Positions 3,560 through 49,013 of a stretch of DNA of 64,000 nt are shown here, piece by piece. The notes under the pieces are model-generated. The model saw only the letters and a list, made by a program, of their open reading frames with translations. It did no database searches and had not been told where the DNA came from. Source of the DNA: Perna viridis (Eukaryota); the NCBI GenBank assembly GCA_037379345.1, contig CM074514.1, forward strand, positions 16,244,001 to 16,308,000, in the 5' to 3' direction. Position numbers and translations under genes: made by a program. Each line of letters begins with the position of its first letter. The stretch's first letter is position 1.

Positions 3560-4010
3560 GTTCTAACCCACAACTCTTCTGAAACCGCTGAGTGGAATTT
3601 AATGAAACTTTCACAAATAATTTATCACACGATGTCGTAGTGCGCCTATCTTCCGTTTTTGTTCTTATACGAAAGACTTTTGGAGTTTTCTGAAGCAAAA
3701 TATGGACTTTGTCATTGGTCACTAACAGGGACCATCTTAATCGCAACTACTTTAAACCGCTGAATGTAGATTTTGACGAAACTTTCACAAATTCGTTATC
3801 AAATAATGCCATTTTGCACATTATTTTGTCTTTTTTTCATCTAAATGACATGGAGATTTCTGGTGTAAAACATGGAATCTGTCATTGGCCGACCAAGGGA
3901 GAACCATCATCATGTCCACAACTCCTCTAAAACCGCTGAATAAAATTTGATGAAAGTTTTATAAATTTATAAATTCACATGGTTCAATTGTGCACCTCAT
4001 AATTTTCATT
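3560..4010. repeat. Degenerate ~173-bp tandem units resembling the central repeats of bivalve Helentron/HINE-type elements
   Basis: Motif CAACT..TC/TT.AAACCGCTGA..GAA.TT.A.GAAA.TTT recurs at 3571, 3744 and 3919. A further partial unit resumes at about 4910-5010. Confidence 0.5.
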
Positions 4011-4011
4011 T

Positions 4012-4902
4012 TCCGGTGCATTACATCTACGAACTTTCTTGTTACAATTGCGAACTTTTTTGTTATACTTGCGAACTTTTTTGTATTACATTTGCGAAAT
4101 ATTTAATAATTTAACATTTGCGAACTTTTTGAAAATATACATCTTTACAATGTTTTAGCCATGCTTCTGGGAAGTACGTAGGATTACAAGTAGGATATAT
4201 AGCACTTAGTCTATTTAATTTATTAAAATATACATTTCTGAAATGAAAAAAAAATCACACACACATGCACATGCACATGCACACGGATTGACAAACATGA
4301 TTTAAAAAATAGTTCAATAAAATAGCCTCAGTTACTTCAGTGTGACACAGTTTTACATGTCGCATGGGGCGGCAAACTTAAAAACTAGGGTTTTCACGAA
4401 ATAAACTTCTGTCAATAACACTAGTCGTGAACTGTAAAAGCTGTTTCAGGAGAAAGTCTAGTTTTTCCTTTTATGCATTTCTAGGAACCGAAATGTCTAA
4501 CAGTCAAGTTGTAAACATTGGTTCCCCCTATTTGTCTCAAAGATTGTAAAATCCATTGTTCAGTAAGATCGTACGTAGTTGTACCGAAGTGACCAGTTGA
4601 TTAGAATTACAAGTTAATATGGGAGACGAAAACAAAGAAATATGCATATAGCCAAAGTAATGTGAAAAAGTGATTAGTGAGCAAAATTCAAAACAGATCA
4701 GACCACATATCTGAACTGTTATATAAATATTTATATAAAGTCTTTACAAAATTTTTATATAGTATATATCATTTGGTTCGCAAATGTTAATTTTACAAAT
4801 GGTTCGCAAATGTAATTAAAGAAGTTTGCAAACGTAGGTGCTAAGATTTCCACATGTAACAGTCCTTAATTACAAAGAGTTCGAGAATTTAATGTTCCCC
4901 GT
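4012..4902. mobile_element. Non-autonomous DNA transposon (MITE-like) with sub-terminal inverted repeats
   Basis: Several TTACA(T)TTGCGAAC motifs at 4020-4130 are mirrored by GTTCGCAAATGTAA-like motifs at 4775-4890. It interrupts the ~173-bp array. Confidence 0.5.
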
Positions 4903-22927: not shown

Positions 22928-25900
22928 CTGTAAAATGTACAAAAAAGAACGTTAAAACCTTGAACATGTCAAAATGAATGTACGTTTTGAGGTATTCTTA
23001 CGCTAGCAAGTCTTTTCATTCAAAGTATGAATAATGATAAAATTATGGCATCTGCATCTTTTTCAACACAACATCTAAGATTAAAAGGTTCTAGCTCGGC
23101 CCAACCTTCACTTTTGTTTCTAAAACTACAATTGTAAATCACCTCAATGTCAAAATACACTAAGATTTTATAATCTGACTTGCATGTATCAATCAGAGTT
23201 TTGACAAGACGCATAAAATATAGAAAAGGTTTTTGGCAAGACACGGTGAACCGTTGTCTGTTGCTTGTCAATGGAATATTTATTATATGCAGTAACAAAT
23301 GTATGAAAGAATTGTACATTTTGAAAGGTAAATCATGTAACAGCGATGAGTTACTAATAAAATGTCTAAAAGAATGAGAAAAGCTTCTGATAAAACATTA
23401 CATAAGCTACTGACTCAGCTTCAGTGAGAAATATCTTTCGTTGAGTAGGAATCGTTATCACAGAAATGATATGTTCGATCACAAAAAATACAGGAATTAA
23501 ATTGAGTAAACCAAATGTTGTTGCTAAAATGTCCTACCTAAAGAACAAGGTCGGAATAGACAAATAGATACCACATAAGAACAGGACCGGGAAAAGACAA
23601 ACATATACCACATAAGAGCAGGACCGGGAATAAACAAACAAATAATTGCTAAGAACAGGGCAAGCAATAGACAAACAAATACCACTTAAGAAGAGGGCCG
23701 GCAATACACAAACAAAGACGAACAAATAATTCCTAAGAACAGGGCAGGGAATAGACAAACAAATACCAATTAAGAAGAGAGCCAGGAATAGACAAACAAA
23801 TAATACCTACATGTAAGAACAGGATACAGAATAGACAAACAAATACCACTTAAGAAGAGGGCCGGAAATAGACAAACAAAGACAAACAAATAATTCCTAA
23901 GAACAGGGCAGGGAATAGACAAACAAATACCAATTAAGAAGAGAGCCGAGAATAGACAAACAAATAATACCTACATGTAAGAACAGGGTACAGAATAGAC
24001 AAACAAATATCACTTAAGAACAGGGCAGGGAATAGACAAACAAATATCACCTATGAACAGGGCCGGGAATAGACAAACAAATACTACCTAGGAACAGGCC
24101 AGGGAATAGACAAACAAATATCACCTAAAAACAAGGCCGGGAATAGACAAACAAATACTACCTAGGAACAGGCCTGGGAATAGACAAACAAATATCACCT
24201 AAGAACAGGGCTGGGAATAGAAAAACAAATACTACTTAGGAACAGGCCATGGAAAAGACAAACCAATATTACCTAGGAACAGGACAGGAAATAGGCAAAT
24301 ACTTTCCATGTTTAATGAGGTAAAATAGACAATGCAAAAACAAAAATATACTACTAGAATACATTCACTTGAACGAATAAAGAAATCCAAGACCTCAAGT
24401 TCAGGTTGGAAACAAATCAGAAGAATATACCAAGAAATAGAAGGATAATTATGCCTTATGTTCAAAGATGTTTACAGACACAAAATGTCACATCATTAAA
24501 ATTACTGATGAGACAAACAACTAATTCATATTTTAAAGGTTGTTCTAAAATATAATCAAAGAAATAATTCTCTTTGAAATTAAGTAAAAATATATTGGTT
24601 TGAAATCATATATAGAAATGAAATATTAAATTTCGTTATTATATGACTTTCGGGAATTTTTGTTGCTAACAATATGAAATGTACTTTGATGATTGTATCA
24701 ATTACGTGAAACCAGATGTGCATAACTATTCTATCCAGTTCCACTCCACGAGGTAATTGTATATGAGTTCAGATAATTAGACGTACCATAGTCAGCTCTG
24801 CAATACTTTTTATTGTTAATTTTTCTTTGTTTCTTTCTGCATTTTCCACACCTGTCACCTGTAAAATAATTAAACCAATTAAAATATGTTAGAACATTTG
24901 TTGAAATACCACATACGTACCTTTGCATGTTCGTACAAACAAAAAAAAAAACAAAAAAAAACTTAACTATTTACAGACAGTAGACTGATACGATATGTTT
25001 ATAGATAGACAGATAAGACGTGATGCCGCAGAGACAACGCCTCCATAATATACCCGACGAAGCCCGGCCAAGTTTTACGACAAGCTTGTTTACTCAACAT
25101 ATTCAAATTGTTACAATATAATTTATAAGCTCTTAGGAGACCGTCCATCCAGTAGATATGTTGGAGATCGAGGATAAATTTTCTGTTTGTGTTCATTTGC
25201 ATATTACTGCTTCGGTTATTTTGACGAATAGTTATATCCAATCATGGGTGGTCAACACGATGCGAAATCGTACAAATAGCACTTCTTTATTTAAAAAAAA
25301 ACGTAAACCAATAAGGAAAAAAAACTTCTTCGAAAGATAGTGCACATTTTGTACCCTTATGTACCCAACGTTCGATCGTTCGGGTTCTTTGGACATTAGT
25401 GCTGTAATATCTTATTTTAAAAATCAAAACATCAAATCAGGACCATTTTCTTTAAAGAAAACAACTTAATAATGACATGGAGCAGTTGGTAGAAAATGTT
25501 ATTTTGTTAAGGAATGATTTTGGTAAGGTAGAAAATAAGTATCTAGTCAGAATCATATATTCTATTCAACTGCCCAGTTCAGTTTAAAAGCTTAAAGAAA
25601 GACTATTTTAAAACTTCTGCCTTAGATCATGAAAAAAGGAAAAAAAGGAGACCCACCAAATCAAATGCCAAGCAATAAACTATTTAACTTTTGCATTTTA
25701 CATTTTAATTATACAGGTCACCACACAGTCTTCAATGATGGACAAAACCCATACCATAAAGCGAGCTGTAAAAGGCCCCTAAATTAATCTGACAACAGAA
25801 ATTACAATACTCAAATGATTCCCCATAGGTCATTAGGTTAACATAAGCGTACATATCTAGAGCAATCATATAATGAAAAATCTTAGAAATGATTAGCAGC

Positions 25901-28900: not shown

Positions 28901-31900
28901 ATCAAAGTGCAAAAGCAACAACATCATCATGCATTCTCGTTCTATGAAGAAAACTGCTTTACCATCCTAAGGAATAAATGTAGCGTGCATCATTTCCTAT
29001 TCCCCGCTATTCAATGATCAAGATCATGCTTAAAAGAGACATCCAAACAAGTGCTGGCCGACACACTTATGCAATTAGAACTTCACAGATTGAAAAAACG
29101 TATGTAGCATTAAACGATAAACAGTTAATGATAGAGTCATCAATTATAAAGACAAAACTACTATAAACCCATACGTATGAGGCAGAGTAATTCAAATTCC
29201 TGATATTTGTAGATTTGCTAAATAATTTAAGCCCTCGAAATTATATTAATAAAAATAGGAATCTATGGCACCTACACGTATCTCCATAGCGCTAACCTTA
29301 AATCACCTACATGTATCTCCATAGCACTAATCTTCAAGCCTCATTTGAGTTAAACTTAAATTTTAATTTTGGCAAAGAGTTCTTCAATTTATCAGTTTTT
29401 GGATATGATTTTATGTCATCTTTTTTCTACTTTAATACACCAGGTAATTGTTTTGATGGCATTAAAAAGGAGTAGTACAATTTATGAGTTACTACTAAGA
29501 ATACTTTTAAAGTACGAAGTTGTGCGCTAGTATTTATTGTGTAGGACTCAGATATTTTGAAGACTTGTTAGGCATATACAGACATGTACATATTGAGTCG
29601 TGACAAACTGATTAGACGTCAATATTAGTCATGCTTAAACTATTATCTACAAATTTTAAGTAAACTGTAAAGGTATAATATTTGTTTCGAAATCTGTATA
29701 GTCCATGCCGCACAGATCTGACAAGCAATTACGATAACCAAAGCGCCCATGTGCACGAACTGAAATTCACTAAATCCTAAATTCGCTCATGCGCTCTGAA
29801 AACTAACTCTTATCTCCTTTTCCTTTCTTGTCTGTAGTTCCGTCTGAAACAATAACCAAATATATATCAGATATTGTAATGGTGAGACAAACGCAGAGTA
29901 AACTGTAGATTCTTATACTTTTTATGTTAAGACGTAAGCAAGATGATTGTCTGAATACTCACTAATGCATGGGGCTATCGGAGATTTGCTTTGCTGGTAC
30001 CCATTGGCACACCGGTTACAAGTTAGGCCGGTAACTCCATCTTTACATGGGCATTGTCCAGAAGTCTGGTTACAAGTCTTCCCCAGGGCGCCAACAGGAT
30101 GACAGTCGCATGCTATAAGATAGAATATAGTTAACTTAACATGTGTTTATTAAAAATTGGGGATCTAGTTAACCTTTTTATTTTATAATACGATATTTTG
30201 TGAATTAAAGTATACAGTAACAGTGGTTAACACAGTAACAAACCAGACTATTGAATAGTGAGCATGTTAAAGTCAATATCTTATGTTACAAACACACTAC
30301 ATGTTGAAGTTTGATTCTGGTAAACATCACCTTAAGTGAAATAACAACAACGATGTCACATCTTGGTGGAATTTATAACGTAATTAAACAACTTTATACA
30401 AAGTCCAATGTATCTTCACGCAAATACGGAAAGGGAAACTACGTGTTAAATACATATTAAATCTATGACCAGCTTCATTATCATATCAAGTTCCTTATTA
30501 CATGAAATTTATATACTTTTTATGTAATTAAGGGTAAAAATTAAATCGTGAAAATGAAGATGAAATGGATCTGCGATATTTATATAACACTGGACGATAT
30601 AATCCAGGACCGGTCAATGTTTTGTATATCATTTCAACATCAAATCCGACTTGGGGTCTCACCTCGGTCTTCAATGAACATTAATTTATTACCGAACTTC
30701 AGAACAGGGAAATATACCATACAAAAGTATGTGAGCTTTGTGTTCTGCATAAATGGTTGCCAAAAAAATTGTAAACTGTATAGGACGCATTACTGTATGA
30801 ATAAGCAATTCATACAGTAATGCGTCCTATACAGTTTACAATTTTTTTGGCAACCATTTATGCAGAACACAAAGCTCACATACTTTTGTATGGTATATTT
30901 CCTGTATACTGTATTTATTACTGGCATTACTGTATGAATTGCTTATTGTCAAAACAGGAAGGCAAAACGTGAAAAATACACTTGACAAGAATTCGGTGTC
31001 GTATCCGATACTGAGTCAGAGTTTAAACTTTTCCTACTAGTTTTACCATCGATAGCTTGTGGTAAGATTCCGGGAGAAACACTGAATTCATTTGTTGTGC
31101 GTCTGTAGACAGCGACATTTTCCTTTATCTTTGAATTTAAAAAAAATCGATATGGACTTACGGAACGAACTTGTTATAAAAAATCCGAGAAAAATGTGTT
31201 GTAGTAAAAAAGAAATGACGGCTAATATACTTCAACCTTGTAGTGTATATAATAAAATCAAGGACTTGTGTGGTTTTGGTGTGTTCATTGTACATTTATC
31301 CAATAATACATTTGCAAGGATATTGATGAAAAAAATACTGGTTCTGCTCGCATGGTTTCAAATTGGCTGCATTAGATTTATACCTTTATCAAACTTCAGG
31401 TTTTATAGATTTATATTCATGTTCTAAAAGTGAAACAGAATGTACCTATTTGTTAAAATTTACTATTTACTTTTATATTAGTTCAGTGTAAGGTTTAAGG
31501 AGGGTAGTAATTAACAATTAAAATCAAACCTAACTGTGAAAACGAACGATCACTTTACCAGTAGCGAAGGTTAAAAGACTTGAACAACTTTACTTGTCAG
31601 ACTTGGAGAGCAATCTTATTTTTTTAATTAGTGTCAAGAATACAAAATGTCCAGTTAAACAACCGAGGATGGGCATAAATTAAAGAAAGTTCAGACATGA
31701 CTGGGAAGGATTCATGGTGGTTCTCTTATCATTTTCACATTTGAAGAAACCAGGTTATATAACCAGATATTGTACAAGGAAACTAAAAAGTCGGAGCACT
31801 GTAAATAACGTGTATTGAGAATTAATTAAAGGTGTGAAAACTGTAATCTAGATTCGATGTCAATGTTTACACAATAGAAATTCCACTGAGGAGGTCTAAT

Positions 31901-34900
31901 TCAGCGGTTAATCTGAAAATTTTCAAGTAGCAATATTATCGTTAATGAAACATGCGTTCATCAAACCATGATATTTATTTGAAAAGAAATCTTTGTCCAA
32001 TTTCTCAATATGGGTTTAGGTGTAAACCTCTTCAGTTTAGTTCTCAAGCCACTGGTTTCTATATAAGCTGGTTTCTTTGGTTGATGACAAAGGTAGAAAT
32101 GCCTTAAATCTCCTCGTTCCATGCAATGTCACACCAAGATTAAGACGTGGATGGTGTTTATACAAATATATAAATACCTTCCATGAATTACTGTTGGGTG
32201 ATATAATATCATTCAATAAAATGACTTGGATTTTTTTGTTTTCTACAAATCTAACACATGTTTTAGTATGATTTATCTCAATAAATTGATTAAATCGTTA
32301 AAATTTATAAACCAATGAATAGCATGAATCTAGATGATGATAAATATATTGTAGCAGTTTCAAATGCACACGATATGCTCGTCATAAGACTGTTCAGGTT
32401 TCTAACGAAGTATTTCACCTTACAACAATGTTTCCTTAGTCGTGTGTTGAAATAAGCAGAAAAAATGATAATTACATTAATCCCTTAAACCTTTTGATTC
32501 ACAAGTTCACGCGCTTGTGCATCGCAAATACATCTTTGAGCTTTCATACAATGATGACAGTATTATCTTAAAGGCTAATATAGAATTTACATCAAAATGT
32601 TCTTGAGATAAAAAAAAAACTTGTTTGCTAAACTCGAATAATCACTGTCAAATTTCGTAACAATTATATAGCTTTACATATGTAAAACTATGATTCCAAG
32701 TAACATAAACATCATAAAACTTCACAGTGGTACAATCATTTTTTTTAAAGTACAAAAATACTCCCAAAATATTTTTCTCATTAATCATAATGTGAAAATC
32801 ATCTGTTGAAAAAAAAACTATCTTCTGGTGTTTTATTTCAAGAATGTTCTACTGAAGCTATCGTCATATTGTGTTGACACGATATCAAAACACTTCATAA
32901 CATTACATGTCAAAAATACAAAGAAAAGGAAACCAATTTTGTACAAATGGTGGGTTGGAACATGTGTCAAAATGTAAAGATGAGAAATCCTCTAGGTTGA
33001 ATGAAGTAACGTTCTTTTCAAAATTAAGAACCGTATGGTTTTAATTAGTTTTACTTTTAAAATATTTATACGAGAAGACCTAATATTATTTGTTTGCAGT
33101 ATATATATAAGTTTTCAAGAAAACAGTATACATGTACATTCTAAAACCATATTACCATTGGTTTGGCCTTTAAGAATATAAATGCACATACACATATAGA
33201 ATTATATTAGGGACTCTTAGAAGTTTTCTGAACAAATATAAAACTCAATCAATAGGAACATTAATTTCAAGTTTAAATTTAGTTAAGTAAAAATGAATGA
33301 AAGAATTTTACGACAGGGTGTAACTTTTGATAACACAGATTTACCATTACCATAGTAACGCGACGTTGTAGCACGGGTTTACAAAGAACTAGACTTACAG
33401 AAGAAATGTAACATATATCCATCGCTAAAGACTACATTGTACCAATAACACAATATCAGTTAGTGCATTTTTATACTACACTGAGTAAAGTTTCACTGAA
33501 GTTCGTCGAATGATTTAAGACAATATCGTGTGTGAATTGCAGTATCTGACAGCAAAGATTGATATAATTCCTTCATACCGTCATTAGGGGCTACTTGATC
33601 ATATTATATTTATAGAGGCTATAAATGACTAAATAGTATAAATCCCAGATAAATAGGAACTTCAAAAATAGTTCCTCTATTCCATTTAATGTCTTTTTGG
33701 GGACGTGCATGCATATATAATGTATGTGTTTTACATTTCCAAACACACGAGGTTCCTCTCTCCGCGAATAAACCAGAGCTTTGCAAGCAATCTAAAAGCT
33801 GCACTCCAAATCATATTTTAATTTTAAGCTCATGAGCTTAGCATTTCCAAACAAAACATTTAAATAATTGAAGCTTTAAACAAACACAAGAATTATGAGA
33901 AGTGCAATCATTAGAATTCATGCATTTACTTGTAAATATTGCCTGAAAGATATAGTCACATTTAACATAGACAGACATGTTTTCTTGAATTCTGGAACTA
34001 TCGACCTAGACACAGTACAAAATATAACGCAAAAAAAAAATGTAAGTACCAAATATGAATACTCAAATTGTCAGAAACACAGTTTGAATTGAACAAATAC
34101 AAAGGAAGGTAAGCGGGGTAATAAAATTGCGTGTGAATAGCAGCATGAAAACAGAAAGAAAAATCATTTAAATAAAGATATAAAAACTAACAGAAAACAT
34201 GCATGCAAGTACAAGTACTTCAAGCGTGCAGTTATGTTGTGCTAGAGAAGAGAGGAAGACCCCATACCTCTACAGACTCTTCGATCTGTTATGTGTTTTG
34301 TTGGGTCACGGTAAAAACCCTCTTTACAATAATGACAAAATCTGCCGGCTGTGTTATGTTTACAGCGAAGGCATACTCCACCACTGCTGAATCCAGACAG
34401 CAAATACAGTTCTCTATTGAAGGTACACCGTCTTGCATGCAAATTACAGTTACATGCTGAAAGAGAAAAGGACATATGGAAGATAAGTGTTTACTATGTT
34501 CCTACCTTTGCATGCTTTCCTGTGCGTTATAGGCTTGTTGGAATCACGATAAAATCCTTCACGACAATAGTGGCAGTTCCTGCCTGCCGTATTATGTCGA
34601 CATTTCAAGCATACCCCTCCACTTGTATAACCCGACAATGTGTACAGCTCCATATTAAAGCGACACCTGCGAGCATGAAGGTTACAGTTGCAAGCTGAAA
34701 AAACAAAATACTGTTAAAATTCAATCAAGATGGAAAATCAAAATACATGTGAATCTCCATAATTTATCTTTAAATCATATTTACGTTCATTTTCTACACG
34801 CCTGTAATTCAATTTACGTTAGTTATTTATATATTTAACAAGAACACATCAAATTTTACAAGTACTGATAGCATTCCTAAATCAATCTTAACATAAAATA

Positions 34901-37900
34901 GTCATTTATAATAATTGAAATGGCCAATGCAGAAAACAGTTTGGGTCATTTTTTAAAGTGAAAAAGTAAAAAGGTTCTTATTTTCGAACTATCCTTCTAT
35001 TCAGGTACATGTACGATTTTATTTTTATGCAGTAACTTCTTCTCATTTTGCATGGAATTGTGATAACTGCTAAATAAGTATATTTATGGCATATTTGAGG
35101 CAAAGGACCAAATCTTGTATCAATTCAACAGAGCCAATGAATCGTAAAGGTACATGAATAGGTGAACACCTGGGCTGACACCACATGGACTATTTAGGAG
35201 AACTTATTATATCTTCAATGATAATGTTAACACGTATGATTTATTTCTTAAATTAAATATTATTTACACAAATATAAAACAATGAATAGTACGCGACATG
35301 TATCTATTATTTCTATGCTTTAAACTATTACATTTTGAGATGGGACACAAACGGGGTTTTACATGTAAAGGCGAAAGCTCCTTTGACCTATGGTTGGTCA
35401 AATGATACTTCCATGAATTTTTTTTATTTTGTTGATCAGGAGCCTATTTTATTTTTCTTGTTTTAAAATATTCTTGCGAGTTTATTTAATTTCTAATTTA
35501 CAGTATTCCAAGCTATCAAATGAATCTGTTAGGCCACCAGAGAACACAAACTCGAGGATCTCATATACAATATATACGTTCAACCATCTAAATGGGTCAA
35601 ACTACAAGATTCTTGGCAATATACCCCTATATACATGTTATGGAAAAGTAAACGATAATTAGAATTTTAAGATCAAACGGACCTCGATCTTATTCACGGG
35701 AGGTAATTCTGGGTATCAAATTACAATTAATGTCCCCGTATCATAGCCATTCGTCATCTTATAAGAGAAATTGACTATTGTCAAGGGATGGATTCTTTTT
35801 AATTGTACTAAATCAGACGATCATTACAGATACTTTTACAACTTAGCGTATGAATAATCAAGATAGTTTTAACTAAATGACCTTTCCAGGCTCATAAAAC
35901 GGATCGGGTAGCATCCTACCTCTCCACAAAAGAAAAGTCTTCCAACCCAATAGCGTGAGAGAATGATGCATAATATAGATTGAAGTTACCTTACACAATT
36001 GTCACAAAAATAATCCATTGTTTTACTTCGTTAGTTATTTTACAAATCTTAAATTATGTTTTTAGTTAATTTATCTATTTGATACATTATACAATTATTT
36101 CTATAAAGAACAAAAGTATCTTTGGATTGCCATTTTAAAAAAAAACAACTTTTTTTTTTTGAAGTTTTATCTCTGCAAGCGAATAACACTTTGGTCACGT
36201 ATACTACAGTACACTACCGACATCATTCATCATCTAGTAGTCATACAAGTACCTTAAACGGCTACAGAAAGTACATATATCCATGAACTAAGTACATGTA
36301 GTATCTTGAAAGAAACAAAACAATGAATATTGATACGTTTTATGTGAGTCGTTTATTATATTTTTCAGTTATAATTCAACTTTCCTGTTTTTGTAGACAA
36401 CAGGAGTGCAATGGAAAGTGTAACTCTCATTTATAAATTTAAAAAAAACAATGTCAAAAATATTATGTTTGGGTGTGTATTACGGAAGAATTTTATTAGG
36501 AATTTACGATTAATCGATGATTCAATACCTAACACAACGCTGCTGGAATTACGGGTTATTTCTATAATCCTCAACATGATTGATTTCGAAATAAGTCATT
36601 TGGACCGTTGTCTTAAAAAAAAACTGCTCCACTTTGTCGCCTAACTTAGCAGGTACAATACCACAAATTGTGAAAGTAAACAGATAATGACGTTTTTATG
36701 ACCAATTTATTTTACGCGATTGTTAACCTTTCTAACAAGTACAATACAAGTATTACGTTAAAACTTTATTTTGTACATGTATAAAATAAAAAAAAAAAAA
36801 AAAAACAAATGTGGAAGAGAAATAACTGTTTATGATTGGACAGTTTTGTTGTTATTTTTCATTTGAGATCAGATTTATTTGGTAAGCTTGGTATATGTTT
36901 AAAACCTTAACATTTTTTACATAACGAATGTACAATATAAACGTATCAGTTTTTAAACTACTGTTTTTTAAAATGTACGAAAAAATTGCGCTGAGAATGA
37001 TGTATTTCATGCCCACTGATTTCTGCAGGTATAGTATAGACACCTATCAGATGTTTATCATTGTAAATCTAGCTTTTGTTATCGGCATGCACTTGAATAT
37101 AATTTTTTGTTTGAAAATTTAATTATTCAGATTTTACACGGATAAGACAACCTGGGTAATAACCCACCTAAGGAAAGTAATTTGTGACAAGAATATGACT
37201 ATTATAGCCTGCTGTTTTCTTTAAAAGCAGCGTTTTAACAGAACATGGCTTTATAATAAACAAAATTGAGCATGAAATATGACCTGAACCGCATCTTTAG
37301 GAGAGAAATTATATCGTTTTGTATCTCTCAATGGGACTTTTTTTTTTAACGTACAGAGTTATCAAAATGGAAAGTCTAGAAAATGAAGGACTTTTTCATT
37401 CAAATCAATGTTGTTACCGTATTAATTTTCAATTAAACGATAAAAAAGTCACATTTTGATGTGATTAAATGCAAATGTAAAAACATTTTCCTATAAGGTA
37501 AACTGAAATATCTACAAGATCGCAATTAATTCAAATAGATGTGCTGTAAAGTGTTCATAATTGTACATCATGGAATTACAGCTTCAATAATGGATGTTAG
37601 AAAAGTGTCAGAACAATTTAATGTCCAGTATTTTTTTCAGGTGGGTGAAAATCACCACATGATCGGCCTACACTTACAATGCTAATATGCGTGACCGTGT
37701 TTATTGTAGTAATTCGTCCCGTAATTACACATCATAGTTCATCTATAAAAATAGTAAGCACAATTATTGAAATTTGTATTGAAGTTATAAACAGTAACTA
37801 TCTGCTCAATGGCAAGTAACCTTTCCCCACAAAAGGTAGAGAATGATAGAAACCAACACGTTTTCCTTATGCTATGTTTGTGTACCAGTGCAGTAAGGAT

Positions 37901-40900
37901 GACATAGAGGAAAAATAATTATCAAACTAGTTTAATTTCATCTAAAGAGTGTAAACTGTGGAAATCAATCTGGAGTATCGGGTTCGTTGAAACCATTTGG
38001 GCATAGAAGTTATTAAGTTAAACGCCATCACAATTGTTGATATACACGTTAGTCTATATTTGCTTGGTTCAAATCGAGTGTATTTTGTCCCAAGATTTCT
38101 GCGACATAGACCGGAGTCGTTTTAATCTACATAATCCGGCTGTTACAGAGTAAAGAAGGTAACGACCCTGTTCTGATTATAGCCTAGAAAGTAACGTGAT
38201 ATTCCGTTTGATATTTTAACCATTTTGCATCTTATGTTTGACGACATTTTAAGCAGATGCAAACAAGGTTTTAATGTCAATCGAAACGATAATTGGGTTC
38301 AGACTCAGAATAAAGACATCCAAGTATAATAGCTTAAGTCGTTTTCTCATCCTTAACCCTATACCCTCCGTAATTACATTTCAATATATAGCTTGATAAT
38401 TACAGAATTGCCGAATATCTATTGCGACGGGTAACCCGTATTTGACTTCGATATCATTAAATAAAGATTACTATTAAAATATCTTAAGAAATCCTTTCAT
38501 TTTGTGTGGCCATTGCTTGGACTTGAAAAGAATATCTTAGTTTTACAAAACCGGCCACGTAGAAAAATATCGCGATTTATGAGTAAAGAAGAAATCGAAT
38601 CAAGTGTCGTTAGAGCGTCAGGGGTCTGAAAAGAAGACACTTTCGCTTGCAGTGCTGTAATGCAAAATAAGAGGCGTGCACTTGAATAGCTTGAATCGTA
38701 ATTTGTCTTCTTAATTTTTCCTGCTGGATACAAGCCAGGGTGACAAAGTCAAAATTTGTGAGAAAATAGTCGGAGATGATTTGTGTGGTGTTAAGATCTA
38801 AAGTTAAATGCAATAAAATTGAAGATCATGAATAAGCAGAAGTGAGAATGAGAGTTTAATAAATGGTTATATGATAGCAGGAAATAAGAGATGAATTTAG
38901 ATTTAATATTTGTATGATTATTTCAGTACAAATTCGTTAGGTTGGAAGTTCAAAGAGTATTTCATTTGCGGTCATAATGAATCTTTATGAGCCTATGAAT
39001 ATATCCCATCTATGACACACATATACAGAGACCTAATATTGAATTCCTATGCAAATATATAACAATAAAGTCTAGCAGTTATCCGACCCCTTGTTTGTGA
39101 TAGTGGTTTACATGCAACATTCAGTAGTCGTTAATTTTGATTTGATTCATATGTCAAATAACGTTAAAATAATTGTACAGAAAGTCTCCACTCAAATACA
39201 TGTATGATGGACATAGGCGGATACAAAGGGGACAGGGCCTTTATGCACGAAAAGTTTGGTTGATTATATAGTAAAAATTGAAAATCACTGAGTGCCCCAA
39301 CCCTAAGCCAGACATCCAATGGTATTTTGCTTAAAAAATGTATAGAAGTGTTAAGCAATTTCAATAAAATGTAAATGTAATACAAAGTCCCTGCTGATTA
39401 ATCGCTACATGTATGGTGTTCATGGCATTATTAATTGAATATGGAAACATATAATAATATAGCAAGGAACAAAAAAGTCACTATTTACATTTACAGTACA
39501 TGTACTCTACCATCGGTTTATACACATTTACAGTACATGTACCTTACTATCGATTTATACACATTTACAGTACATGTACCCTACTATCGGTTTATACACA
39601 TTTACAAGAGCAGTCTTAAACTCTTATAACGGGCATTTTTGTCAGTGAAAACTATGTTCAGTACACTTTAGTGAGTCGAGCTGTAGAGTTACTTTCCAAG
39701 TACCGGACATTCAAATCATTATATTCTTGTAAAATATTGGCAACATATAGTTATGTCACCGACTGTTTAATCAAGTTTTGGCTTACAACTGAAGGTTTAA
39801 AATGTATCATGGGTTTGTTTATTTCTTACTCCAAAGTGAGTAACACAGGAAGCTTAATACGGCAAGGATAGCTGTGCTAGTTTTTAAATTAAACAATATC
39901 GAAATTCTAAGTAAACAAGTGTTAGTAGAAATCGTCATTATGTTTGTTCTAGAACTTGTTTACAAAGTAATATCAATAAATACGAATGAAGAAATAAAAC
40001 AGGTTTACATAATGGTGGGACTGCCTACACATGAATAGACCTCATAACTTAACATAATGGTGGGACTACCTTTGCCATGAACACAGACCCTATAACTTTC
40101 ACATAATAGAGGGACTACCTTTCCATAAAAATAGTTCCTATAACTTAACATAATTGAGGTACTACCTTTACATGAACAGACCCCATGACTTTACATAATG
40201 GTGGGACTACCTTTACATTAAAATATACCCCATAACTTTCACAAAAAGATGAGACTACTTTACATGAAAATTGATCCCTTAACTTAACATAATAGTGGTA
40301 CTACATTGAGATGAAAACAGACCCCATAACTTTACATAATGATGGAACCACTTTAACATGAAATAGACCCCATAACTTTTACATAATGGTGGGACTACCT
40401 TTACTTGACAACAACCCGTGACTTTCATATACATATGAAACGATCCTTTATATGAAAATAGATCCCATAACATTCATACTGTACATGTATATGGTGGGCA
40501 TCCCTTACATGAAAATAAACCCCATAACATTCATTGAATGGTGGGAATACTTTTACATTAACATAGATCCCATAACTGTGACATAACGGTGAGACTATCT
40601 TTACAATGAAACAGACCCCATAACTTTCACATAACGTGAGACTACCTTTATAATGAAACAGACCCAATAACTTTTACATAATGGTATGATTACTTTTATA
40701 TGAAACAGACCCCCTAACTTTCACATAAACGGTGGTACTACTTTAACATAAAAATAGACTCAATAGATTTCTTGATTTTGAATCACCATGACCTTTCCAG
40801 CTGTATTTTGTACTTGTATGATGATAGACTTGTGTACTTTCTATACCAGTTTAATTTTATGTGTTTCTGATATCTGAACAATAAATTCCTACTTTTCATA

Positions 40901-46900: not shown

Positions 46901-49013
46901 TGAGATGAGATTGTGTTGACCCGTGATACCTTTTATTACAAAGAGGTGAAGTAGGATGCAGTTTATGGTAAAAAATTAACATGCATTGATAACTTGCAAC
47001 ATGGGTTTCAGAGGCAAGGTTCGCCAAGCATCGGCGATAAAGAATAAAAACTGGCTTGTGTTTACGGTGTACGATATCGGTACGAACATTAAATATTTAT
47101 GAACTGCTTAAAATGGACATAAATTTCTCATGAACGCCTTTCATTGAAAACAATTTACGTATACAGTCTGTAGCCTACATCAATACGCAGATAGAAAAAA
47201 GTTGCAAAGATGTCTAGCGCTGGGTATTTCATATCGTTTTCCCACTGAATAAGATTTAGAAGAATTTGTTCTATTTAATATTGAAATTCATATCAATACT
47301 CAGATCTTTATTTTTTTTATTATTTAATGTATATGATATTTATGTAAATTATTTATTATATAAAATATGTGAATAAACTACTAAATTAGCATACAATCAC
47401 CTAGTTATAAAAAAATTATAATTTAGGAACAAATTTGTGAAAAAAAGAATTCTATTTTCCTTGATGTTATGGCGTAGTTCACACCACCTGCCTAAATAAT
47501 AAAAAATGTTTTTTCATACATATTAAACACTCAAACAAATGTTATTATCATCCAGATATTAATAATTCTACGTATAAAAATGATGTATTGCATTTATAAC
47601 GTTGGTTGAACAGTGGGTTCTTGGATGCTAGTTTGAGTTCCATCAGCGTTCTTTGGCTTAATGCCTTTCTTATCTCGTATACCTCATAAATCTATCATAG
47701 TTGCATTAAAGTATCATCATCATATCCAAACTTTAAAAAACTAATACATAATGTTGCAATAAAATATTACTTAAAAACCATTTTTTCAAGTTAAAGCTAG
47801 GATTGTCTAGTAATGTTGAACTCGAGAGATTAAAACAATAAATTTTGTTGTTAATTTTTGACTTTGAATAATGTTTCATACGTGCACTTAGGCTTCTTGG
47901 TACATATTGAATATTGCAAGTCTGAAATGACACAAATTTTACACATTTGCCTGTAAAAATCTACATTAACTCACCGACACACTCGTTGGCAATTCTGCTG
48001 GTAGCACGTGCCCACGGCCTGTCAAAATGGAATGGTTTACATTTTTCACATTCTGATCCCGCAGTATTGTGCTTACAATCACACACATATTGACCTTCTC
48101 GATTTGTTATGCAACGAGATGCATGACCGTTACACTTGCACCTGCCACCAACAGCAAAATCGGATAAAGAATAGTAGTAGCTCTCTCTTGCAGATTCATC
48201 GTCGTGTTCGTCTCCATAAGTATTCAGTCTGCTAAAGACTACCATAACATCGGTTGCGGTAACCCAATCTTGGAGAATAGGACTGTTGTCAAAATCATAT
48301 GCTGATGGTCTACCTTCAAGTGTGCTGAAAGCAACACGTGCTCCAGATAATGGCTCTATATTGCTGTATGACTCTGTGCATAAAGCCTCTTGTTCGTTCG
48401 CTTTTGTCACTAAAGCTCGTGGAGATTTGGAATACATTTTCTTACAGTTACTCGAATAATATTGGAATGGTACCCATGTTTTCCCATAATCCATACTTTT
48501 AAATAATGCCATGGAATCTGGTCTCGCAGAACAAAACTGTAAACTAATGTAAGTGATCTCATATTTCTTCCCCAAAGAAAGTTTCAGAGTAACATTTTGT
48601 GGATATTGTACATATGTATTAGACATCCAACACGTTAAATTATTTGGATTATTCAGGTCAGTTAAATACGATGGTGGATGCATGCGTTTTGGATGGTTCC
48701 CGTCACAAATAAAACAATTCCGAATAACACGACCGTCTTTGTCCGTTGTAGATTTGCAATACCTAGTTGGCGGCGAACCACACGTACTGGATGCTGTAAC
48801 GTCTTTGCCAAAGGCTGCATTTACGAAATCAGGGGTACACAGTGTAGGTTCCCCTCTCTCGTTGTAACAAGGATCGGGTGGTGTTTGTTGACGAACGAAC
48901 ATATCCATATATGATCCTGTCCACGAATCACGAACACACAAACAAATTAGAACTATTGATATCTTAAGCATTTTTGTCACTAATTTTGAAATTCTCAGCA
49001 TCCATAGTCTCAT
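22581..49013 (-). CDS. Ntn1: Netrin-1 / UNC-6 orthologue (about 596-610 aa with one LE2 exon; LN-LE1-LE2-LE3-C345C)
   Basis: Exons 47975-49013, 34506-34694 and/or 34268-34456, 29963-30112, 26633-26668, 24787-24858 and 22581-22927 join in frame through phase-1 GT-AG introns. Hallmark netrin motifs: [86 protein letters not shown]. Confidence 0.97.
23534..24303. repeat. Intronic minisatellite, ~37-bp unit, ~20 copies, with a 164-bp higher-order duplication
   Basis: Consensus about AAGAACAGGGCCGGGAATAGACAAACAAATA(T/C)CACCT. The block starting at 23688 is repeated at 23852. Confidence 0.95.
24787..24858 (-). CDS. Ntn1: Netrin C345C/NTR domain, first exon ([24 protein letters not shown])
   Basis: ttttacag|GT...TAT G|gtacgt, 72 nt. 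KKYC..DY motif of the NTR domain. Confidence 0.9.
26633..26668 (-). CDS. Ntn1: Netrin linker micro-exon ([12 protein letters not shown])
   Basis: tttttttcttgcag|AA ATC CCT...AAA G|gtatga, 36 nt, phase 1-1. Gives the PCI-KIP junction typical of netrin-1. Confidence 0.8.
27938..28295. mobile_element. Palindromic non-autonomous DNA element (possibly Crypton-type)
   Basis: Imperfect fold-back at 27938-28120 (…ATCACGAGTGCC…GGCACGAGTGAT…). Same family in inverted orientation at 58161-58346. The 28160-28295 part matches 56575-56820. The family name is inference. Confidence 0.6.
29963..30112 (-). CDS. Ntn1: Netrin LE3 (V-3) exon
   Basis: cttatag|CA...ATT A|gtgagt, 150 nt. Encodes [50 protein letters not shown]. 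Absent from the ORF track. Confidence 0.95.
30708..30902. repeat. Perfect inverted repeat, 95-bp arms and 5-nt spacer
   Basis: 30708-30802 is the exact reverse complement of 30808-30902. Spacer AAGCA. Confidence 0.95.
34268..34456 (-). CDS. Ntn1: Netrin LE2 (V-2) exon, copy B (divergent tandem duplicate, likely mutually exclusive with A)
   Basis: cttttctctttcag|CA...AGA G|gtatgg, 189 nt. Encodes [63 protein letters not shown], with all 8 Cys kept. Confidence 0.88.
34506..34694 (-). CDS. Ntn1: Netrin LE2 (V-2) exon, copy A (canonical-like)
   Basis: tttcag|CT...AAA G|gtagga, 189 nt. Encodes [63 protein letters not shown]. Confidence 0.93.
39487..39606. repeat. Minisatellite, 37-bp unit, ~3.2 copies
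   Basis: ACATTTACAGTACATGTAC.CTAC.ATCG.TTTATAC at 39487, 39524 and 39561, partial at 39598. Confidence 0.9.
40004..40765. repeat. Minisatellite, ~46-47-bp unit, ~16 copies
   Basis: Consensus about TTCACATAATGGTGGGACTACCTTTACATGAAACAGACCCCATAACT with divergent copies. Confidence 0.92.
47975..49013 (-). CDS. Ntn1: Netrin coding exon 1: signal peptide, laminin N-terminal (VI) domain and LE1
   Basis: In-frame ATGs at 49013, 49001 and 48971 ([19 protein letters not shown] is signal-like). Donor ECV-G|GTGAGT at 47975/47974. Confidence 0.95.

Follow-up and report, generated by a model that had tools for sequence, protein, structure and literature searches.

Two alternative exons for the second laminin-EGF repeat in a netrin gene of Perna viridis form a homologous pair that is conserved across lophotrochozoans

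Netrin is the textbook bifunctional guidance cue, and the choice between attraction and repulsion is placed on the receptor side (DCC versus UNC5), a view that comes from flies, worms and vertebrates. Vertebrate netrin-1, Caenorhabditis elegans UNC-6 and Drosophila NetA and NetB are known with one exon for the second laminin-EGF repeat (LE2). The netrin gene described here is located on the minus strand of a 64,000-nt stretch of the Perna viridis genome (assembly GCA_037379345.1, contig CM074514.1, forward-strand positions 16,244,001–16,308,000). This whole stretch is termed the window, and all coordinates are positions within it. The mussel gene has the same domain order as the genes named above and the same all-phase-1 layout of the LE2 exon, and its third laminin-EGF repeat (LE3) and NTR module are equally typical. 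In spiralians, however, LE2 is a two-way switch. We know of no LE2 switch in flies.

Pairs of mutually exclusive exons that are kept apart by steric hindrance are familiar from alpha-tropomyosin (exons 2 and 3), to which the mussel pair can be likened. The C. elegans pairs egl-15 5A/5B and let-2 9/10 resemble the mussel pair in being homologous tandem exons of equal length and phase, with a short intron between them and with lengths that are multiples of three (3n), so that nonsense-mediated decay (NMD) cannot impose the choice (PMC4165533, PMC5740500). The spacers in C. elegans are 14–30 nt long, too short to be excised, as against 46–57 nt in lophotrochozoan netrin genes, a length only presumed to be below the splicing limit of molluscs, brachiopods and nemerteans. 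In the Dscam1 clusters and in splice forms of unc-40/DCC and UNC5, alternative exons likewise re-specify the extracellular surface of a guidance molecule; the mussel case differs in that a secreted ligand is diversified, in two variants only, and in that no docking/selector structure was detected in the block tested.

A human catalogue of mutually exclusive exons makes no mention of netrin or NTN1 (PMC5740500), and unc-6 is not among the 29 clusters catalogued for C. elegans (PMC4165533). A full-text literature search on alternative splicing, tandem exon duplication and mutually exclusive exons in netrin yielded no description of the pair, its age, its spacer or its position on a receptor surface. 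An earlier reading of this DNA, made from the letters alone (termed the sequence-only reading), knew of no such description. This stands for the papers searched, but not for the databases: the same two isoforms are present in RefSeq as "netrin-1-like isoform X1/X2" of Mytilus, Crassostrea, Ostrea, Saccostrea, pectinids, Patella, Lineus and Lingula, and as two models in Owenia, all predicted automatically and without commentary.

The exons that concern the switch are as follows.

49013–47975, minus strand: coding part of exon 1, with the signal peptide, the laminin N-terminal (LN) domain and the first laminin-EGF repeat (LE1); donor after 47975, phase 1.
34694–34506, minus strand: exon A (LE2a), 189 nt, phase 1-1; the first-position, canonical-type LE2.
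34505–34457, minus strand: spacer intron between A and B, 49 nt, GT..AG.
34456–34268, minus strand: exon B (LE2b), 189 nt, phase 1-1; the second-position, derived LE2.
30112–29963, minus strand: LE3 exon, 150 nt, phase 1-1; the acceptor to which both A and B are spliced.

Exons A and B each encode a full laminin-EGF repeat with all 8 cysteines and of netrin LE2 type, and both translations score above the Pfam laminin-EGF thresholds (PF00053, PF24973). Each exon is preceded by a pyrimidine tract and AG, and followed by GT (gtagga after A, gtatgg after B). The two share 46 of 62 amino acids encoded by whole codons, or 47 of 63 (75%) when the split Ala codon is included, such that 16 of the 63 LE2 residues differ. 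Different codons are used at 29 of the 46 identical residues (30 of 47 with the split codon), and the DNA identity is 121/189 (64%). The sequence-only reading had given the same positions, length, phase, splice sites and cysteines, as well as the 47/63 identity and about 30 differing codons, and recomputation on the minus strand returns the same values.

Exon A aligns end to end and without gaps to the LE2 of every solved netrin-1 structure (human residues 341–402). It is ~87% identical to the LE2 of human netrin-1, and 84–87% identical to that of structurally characterised netrin-1. A search of the whole assembly (723 Mb, 46 contigs) shows these two exons to be the only netrin-1-type LE2 copies, the next best match being 51% identical. 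A and B are thus adjacent, of equal length and phase, and clearly homologous, as expected of a homologous tandem duplicate.

Splicing was analyzed with the raw reads of two stranded RNA-seq runs (X21, X22) and with the contigs of two run assemblies (X7, X9), mapped on positions 29900–35800, with joins reported at a threshold of 3 reads. The first mate maps to the plus strand in all reads, as expected of a minus-strand transcript. The joins found are:

A to LE3 (34506|30112): 5 reads in X21 and 9 in X22; contigs in X7 and X9.
B to LE3 (34268|30112): 6 reads in X21 and 5 in X22; contigs in X7 and X9.
Exon 1 to A: 3 reads in X21 and 6 in X22; contigs in X7 and X9.
Exon 1 to B: 5 reads in X21 and 4 in X22; contigs in X7 and X9.

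No join of A to B (34506|34456) is seen at the 3-read threshold in X21 and X22 or in the contigs of X7 and X9, and removal of the 49-nt spacer is never seen in the RNA data of these four sets. The unaligned read ends at the two acceptors (34695 for A, 34457 for B) are identical to each other and match the end of exon 1 at 47976–48005. In both assemblies, A and B are each present as a 246-nt contig consisting of the exon plus 28 letters on either side, common to exon 1 and LE3. Twin contigs of this kind with the same flanks are the signature of two alternative paths. Contig depth for A and B is 30.5 and 15.9 in X7, and 13.4 and 12.3 in X9. As for skipping of both exons, no loose end leading from exon 1 is present at the LE3 acceptor at 3 reads, where it should be noted that exon 1 is outside the mapped stretch and that depth is low.

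Among 20 sequencing runs that contain the exons (8 studies among them), 16 include 0.82 of the sampled 31-mers of positions 34268–34694; if the two exons are present and the spacer is absent, 318 of 397 words are expected, to which 0.82 corresponds. A few DNA-like runs contain 1.00 of the sampled words.

Transcripts of both kinds, exon 1-A-LE3 and exon 1-B-LE3, are thus present in similar amounts, and the gene makes two isoforms with three laminin-EGF repeats that differ only in LE2, and no netrin with four repeats. Both exons are joined to the same constitutive flanks and never to each other, at a sensitivity of ~10–20%. The sequence-only reading had preferred such a pair of isoforms and had predicted the joins 47975 to 34694, 47975 to 34456, 34506 to 30112 and 34268 to 30112, all of which are present in the RNA reads; the four-repeat netrin that it had held less likely finds no support, the join 34506 to 34456 not being reported. 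It had also considered that copy B might go unused, and B is joined to exon 1 by 9 reads and to LE3 by 11. As a netrin-1 family gene it is unremarkable, and its exon pair has the adjacency, the homology, the common flanks and the lack of A-to-B joins by which homologous mutually exclusive clusters are defined.

The pair is not limited to Perna. RefSeq isoform pairs of equal length differ only within LE2 in 14 of 14 cases, from 13 species in four phyla, and the differences amount to 9–19 residues, all inside LE2. The species are two mussels (Mytilus edulis, M. galloprovincialis), three oysters (Crassostrea virginica, Ostrea edulis, Saccostrea echinata), three scallops (Mizuhopecten yessoensis, Pecten maximus, Argopecten irradians), the limpet Patella vulgata (a gastropod), the nemertean Lineus longissimus, the brachiopod Lingula anatina and the annelid Owenia fusiformis (two models). 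Transcript-derived open reading frames of other bivalves have exactly one LE2, of the B type.

The DNA of five further lophotrochozoans (M. edulis, C. virginica, Patella, Lingula and Lineus) contains, in the same order, two exons of 189 nt in phase 1-1, both flanked by canonical splice sites. The B copies keep their splice sites in all five, a point on which the sequence-only reading had wished related species to be compared. The spacer between A and B is 49 nt in the P. viridis window and in M. edulis, 57 nt in C. virginica, 53 nt in Patella, and 46 nt in both Lingula and Lineus. In the same genes the flanking introns are 9.7–27 kb upstream and 2.8–7.4 kb downstream, and no other intron seen is below ~400 nt. 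Outside this group, the complete locus of a scorpion (Centruroides) and that of a sea urchin (Lytechinus) contain just one LE2 exon at the DNA level.

How joining of A to B is avoided can be considered from the exon and spacer lengths. As 189 is 63 × 3, an mRNA with both exons or with neither keeps its reading frame and is no target for NMD; exon pairs that are policed by NMD have lengths not divisible by three. An mRNA that retained the 49-nt spacer would be frameshifted and reach a stop codon. Putative branch points (CTTAT, CTTAAC, CTTAC, CTAT and similar), read by eye, are ~17–30 nt from the exon A donor. Steric interference in human genes is associated with a donor-to-branch-point distance below 50 nt (PMC5740500), and the exclusivity of 3n exon pairs in C. 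elegans is enforced by spacers too short to excise (PMC4165533). For C. elegans the limit corresponds to introns below ~40 nt. The donor of A and the branch point of B would thus be too close for U1 and U2 to occupy the same intron, and each mRNA would take either A or B between exon 1 and LE3, the spacer being too short to splice. A steric block of double inclusion by the short spacer is the most likely mechanism, in view of a spacer that is 46–57 nt across six species of three phyla beside flanking introns in the kilobase range.

Two conserved intronic stretches are of interest with respect to the choice between the exons.

35882–35673, minus strand: intronic block located ~1 kb upstream of A; its identity to Mytilus edulis is 78% over 215 nt.
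34267–34193, minus strand: intron stretch just downstream of exon B, conserved with Mytilus, with UGCAUGCAUG at 34207–34198.

The sequence UGCAUGCAUG is a double UGCAUG (Rbfox-type) motif located 62–66 nt downstream of exon B and conserved in Mytilus. Another UGCAUG is present inside exon B at +17 (~34435–34440); it is preserved in four molluscs and in Lineus through the use of TTG for a Leu that exon A encodes by CTN. The upstream block is present in a single copy in the genome, which rules out a transposon origin, and lies ~2.3 kb upstream of A in Mytilus.

These elements bear on the possibility, which we consider unlikely though it deserves attention, that the exclusivity is real but is enforced by RNA structures (docking/selector pairing) or by trans-acting splicing factors rather than by spacer length. 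The conserved UGCAUG stretch downstream of B, the single-copy block upstream of A and the UGCAUG retained within exon B all speak for it, and some factor must in any case pick A or B and prevent skipping of both. A mechanism of this type would also be needed by the rotifer Adineta (see below), whose spacer is 185 nt, if that pair is exclusive. Against it stand the spacer length, held at 46–57 nt in six species of three phyla while other introns are ~400 nt or longer, and the absence of above-chance pairing: duplexes of the upstream block with the spacer or the exon flanks have energies weaker than those of shuffled sequences, one candidate block having been tested. The steric reading is thus retained for exclusion itself, and the downstream UGCAUGCAUG stretch, the UGCAUG at +17 of exon B, the lower synonymous divergence of exon B (see below) and the upstream block are leads for the choice of A versus B.

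The age of the duplication was examined with a maximum likelihood tree of 29 LE2 sequences and 62 alignment columns. The second-position exons of molluscs, Lingula, Lineus and Owenia are on one side of a branch with a support of 89/94. In the DNA-verified set, the second-exon clade is found in 98% of bootstrap trees, and the first-position exons stay with the outgroups. Approximately unbiased (AU) tests reject a sister relationship of A and B in mussels (p = 0.003), Owenia (p = 0.0096) and Lineus (p = 0.012). Signature residues at 14, 18 and 39 are also common to the second exons. The use of TTG for Leu in the second exon and of CTN in the first has one exception, Lingula (CTA).

Synonymous divergence (dS) is saturated in every within-species comparison of A with B and in almost every orthologous one, and nonsynonymous divergence (dN) is 0.07–0.24. 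Between P. viridis and Mytilus, dN is 0.021 for exon A and exon B alike, and dS is 1.43 in exon B and saturated in exon A. A dN/dS ratio is not computable where dS is saturated, which is the case nearly everywhere, and dN and the saturation itself were used instead. Retention of both copies under purifying selection since the duplication is supported by these values. The sequence-only reading had proposed that the duplication was old and that purifying selection acted on both copies; the presence of the pair in at least four lophotrochozoan phyla makes it much older than could be seen from one sequence. The duplication certainly predates the split of molluscs, annelids and nemerteans, and a single tandem exon duplication in an early spiralian is the best reading of its origin.

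It is improbable that the pairs arose by separate, lineage-specific duplications or were homogenised by gene conversion. The AU tests do keep a separate origin for Lingula (p = 0.42) and for rotifers (p = 0.25), and the alignment has only 62 columns. The four-phylum clade of second exons and its bootstrap value, the rejection of within-lineage pairing in mussels, Owenia and Lineus, and the likeness in order, length, phase, short spacer, signature residues and Leu codon are all contrary to separate duplications. Ongoing conversion is not in keeping with a within-species DNA identity of A and B of just 63–72% together with saturated dS.

A region-restricted protein search for B-type LE2 sequences outside Spiralia was dominated by vertebrate netrin-1, and revealed tandem models in rotifers. 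Models of bdelloid rotifers (Adineta and Rotaria) have two LE2 repeats in tandem, i.e. they are proteins with four laminin-EGF repeats, and the second repeat carries the B-type FNKELYLLSGRKSGG signature. The Adineta steineri locus has two 189-nt phase 1-1 exons at 3607–3795 and 3981–4169. When rotifers are added to the tree, the support for the second-exon branch falls from 89/94 to 57/91, and a rotifer-specific duplication is kept by the AU test cited above. Orthology of the rotifer pair to the lophotrochozoan pair is plausible. The Adineta pair could be a true four-repeat netrin, or an exclusive pair that relies on another mechanism.

That both exons are as a rule spliced into one mRNA, to give a netrin with four laminin-EGF repeats, is very improbable for the mussel gene. 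A join of A to B would keep the reading frame (189 is a multiple of three), and both copies are present in the bdelloid models and in a RefSeq model of Saccostrea cucullata (X4, 692 aa), which has A followed by B in one protein and which may stem from rare, leaky removal of the short spacer or be an artefact of gene prediction. The two RNA-seq runs, however, show no A-to-B join at the 3-read threshold versus 14 reads for A to LE3 and 9 for exon 1 to B, the run assemblies display clean alternative paths, and all other RefSeq isoforms and transcript open reading frames have a single LE2. Lastly, a decaying or unused pseudo-exon and an assembly artefact are ruled out by the RNA junctions and the cross-species conservation, given that both copies are intact, spliced at similar levels and conserved across phyla with dN far below dS, and are found in independent assemblies and in 20 sequencing runs from 8 studies.

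The residues that change between A and B can be placed on netrin-1 structures. In a 2026 crystal study of netrin-1 with UNC5B, the loop-b helix of LE2 (residues 350–366, human +2) forms the lower jaw of the UNC5B clamp and is the epitope of the antibody NP137 (PMC13759497). In preclinical cancer studies this antibody blocked the binding of netrin-1 to UNC5B. In vertebrate netrin-1 the helix is adjacent to the heparin site. The residue equivalent to mouse K358, studied as the mutant K358L, is described as critical for the binding of UNC5B; heparin, which is needed for high-affinity UNC5B binding, is bound by the RRXR motif and by the Arg that corresponds to human R372; and netrin dimerises by way of LE2-LE3 contacts (PMC13759497). 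Comparison of A and B in 11 species pairs shows systematic differences at three positions:

Human M354: M, I, K or L in the first exon; always K or R in the second exon; M in outgroups.
Human K358: K, T, A, I or N in the first exon; L in 9 of 11 second exons; K in outgroups.
Human H379: N, S or M in the first exon; F, H or Y in the second exon; H or Y in outgroups.

In exon B of P. viridis, R351 of the RRxR motif is replaced by T, and R372 by K. A and B do not differ at the dimer residues of CHYCxEG.

With differences on the loop-b helix and at the heparin residues, the switch sits on the UNC5/heparan-sulfate surface and leaves the surfaces of LN and LE3 untouched. Judging by the 84–87% identity of exon A to netrin-1 LE2, mussel netrin may be expected to bind DCC/neogenin and UNC5. 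On this analysis the switch probably tunes the engagement of UNC5 and/or heparan sulfate, while the LN and LE3 sites for DCC/neogenin would be unchanged. The more specific proposal, that the A and B forms differ in their engagement of UNC5 or glycans, is put forward tentatively, at somewhat below even odds. The broadest version is given much the same odds: a two-state spiralian ligand, dating from before the mollusc/annelid/nemertean/brachiopod split, in which a spacer-locked LE2 switch with a natural Leu at the K358 position would let cells secrete either an UNC5-engaging form or one with weakened UNC5/heparan-sulfate engagement, so that attraction versus repulsion could be set at the ligand.

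Taken as a whole, LE2 is read as a mutually exclusive pair of homologous exons that originated in a single ancient spiralian duplication, with a presumed steric block of double inclusion and a probable tuning of UNC5/heparan-sulfate engagement; a probability of about 0.85 is given to this reading. Several points weigh against it. The RNA depth is modest (~10–15 junction reads per run), and an A-to-B product below ~10–20% would go unlisted; the tissues of the runs are coded, so that switching by tissue or stage has no support in these RNA data. The S. cucullata X4 model holds both copies. The AU tests keep separate origins for Lingula and the rotifers on 62 columns. The Adineta netrin gene uses other introns of 41–47 nt, its A-B spacer being 185 nt, and the steric limit is a presumed one for lophotrochozoans. 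In molluscs exon A, too, lacks the Lys of K358, with T, A or I in its place, so that a scheme in which A binds UNC5 and B does not may be too simple.

The remaining exons complete a gene of the netrin-1-type layout LN-LE1-LE2-LE3-NTR, in which all introns are of phase 1:

29843–29808, minus strand: cassette exon, 36 nt, phase 1-1, directly after LE3; optional.
26668–26633, minus strand: linker exon, 36 nt.
24858–24787, minus strand: NTR-start exon, 72 nt, located by tblastn with the Mytilus protein and by splice sites.
22927–22581, minus strand: last coding exon, with NTR (PF01759, E = 4.5e-22), a basic tail and the stop codon.

Searched individually against Pfam, exon 1 matches Laminin_N (PF00055, E = 1.1e-82) over the full profile and also gives a laminin-EGF match; its protein is 90% identical to the netrin-1-like protein of Mytilus edulis. 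The laminin N-terminal module, three laminin-EGF repeats in the product and the C-terminal NTR (UNC-6/C345C) module that characterise netrin-1-type proteins are all present. The exon lengths, summed singly rather than taken from a joined coding sequence, total 1866 nt or 622 codons with the cassette counted.

The LE3 donor at 29963 continues either to the cassette (29843) or to the linker (26668), and the loose ends of reads there are mixed, with an agreement of 0.63–0.66. At the cassette position, an insert of 13–21 aa distinguishes RefSeq isoforms in six species (Mytilus, oyster, scallop, Patella, Lineus and Lingula). The cassette after LE3 is conserved in position and not in sequence. Its use is a further alternative splicing event, independent of the LE2 switch, and the two together yield four isoforms.

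Other observations concern the introns and the rest of the window. Minisatellites are present in introns at 23553–24299 (37-nt units, ~19 repeats) and 40004–40759 (47/94-nt units, ~8–16 repeats). Several contigs of the run assemblies (one of 1137 nt with a depth of 43, and others) touch the intron between B and LE3 for ~20 nt at 30495–30515 and at ~31407 and then continue into unrelated sequence; these contacts are probably due to a short repeat in common with an expressed locus elsewhere. The other long open reading frames of the window, including a 376-aa frame at 1325–2452 on the plus strand, have no Pfam match.

The interest of the pair comes from the location of the switch, its long retention, and its absence from the model organisms on which views of netrin signalling are based. 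A very old 3n pair with a spacer of ~50 nt across phyla is useful for the study of steric splicing control outside model organisms, and the two exons provide natural variants for structure-function work on netrin. If the proposed function is true, an LE2 switch on the UNC5B clamp and the NP137 helix would add a ligand-side layer of control to netrin signalling.

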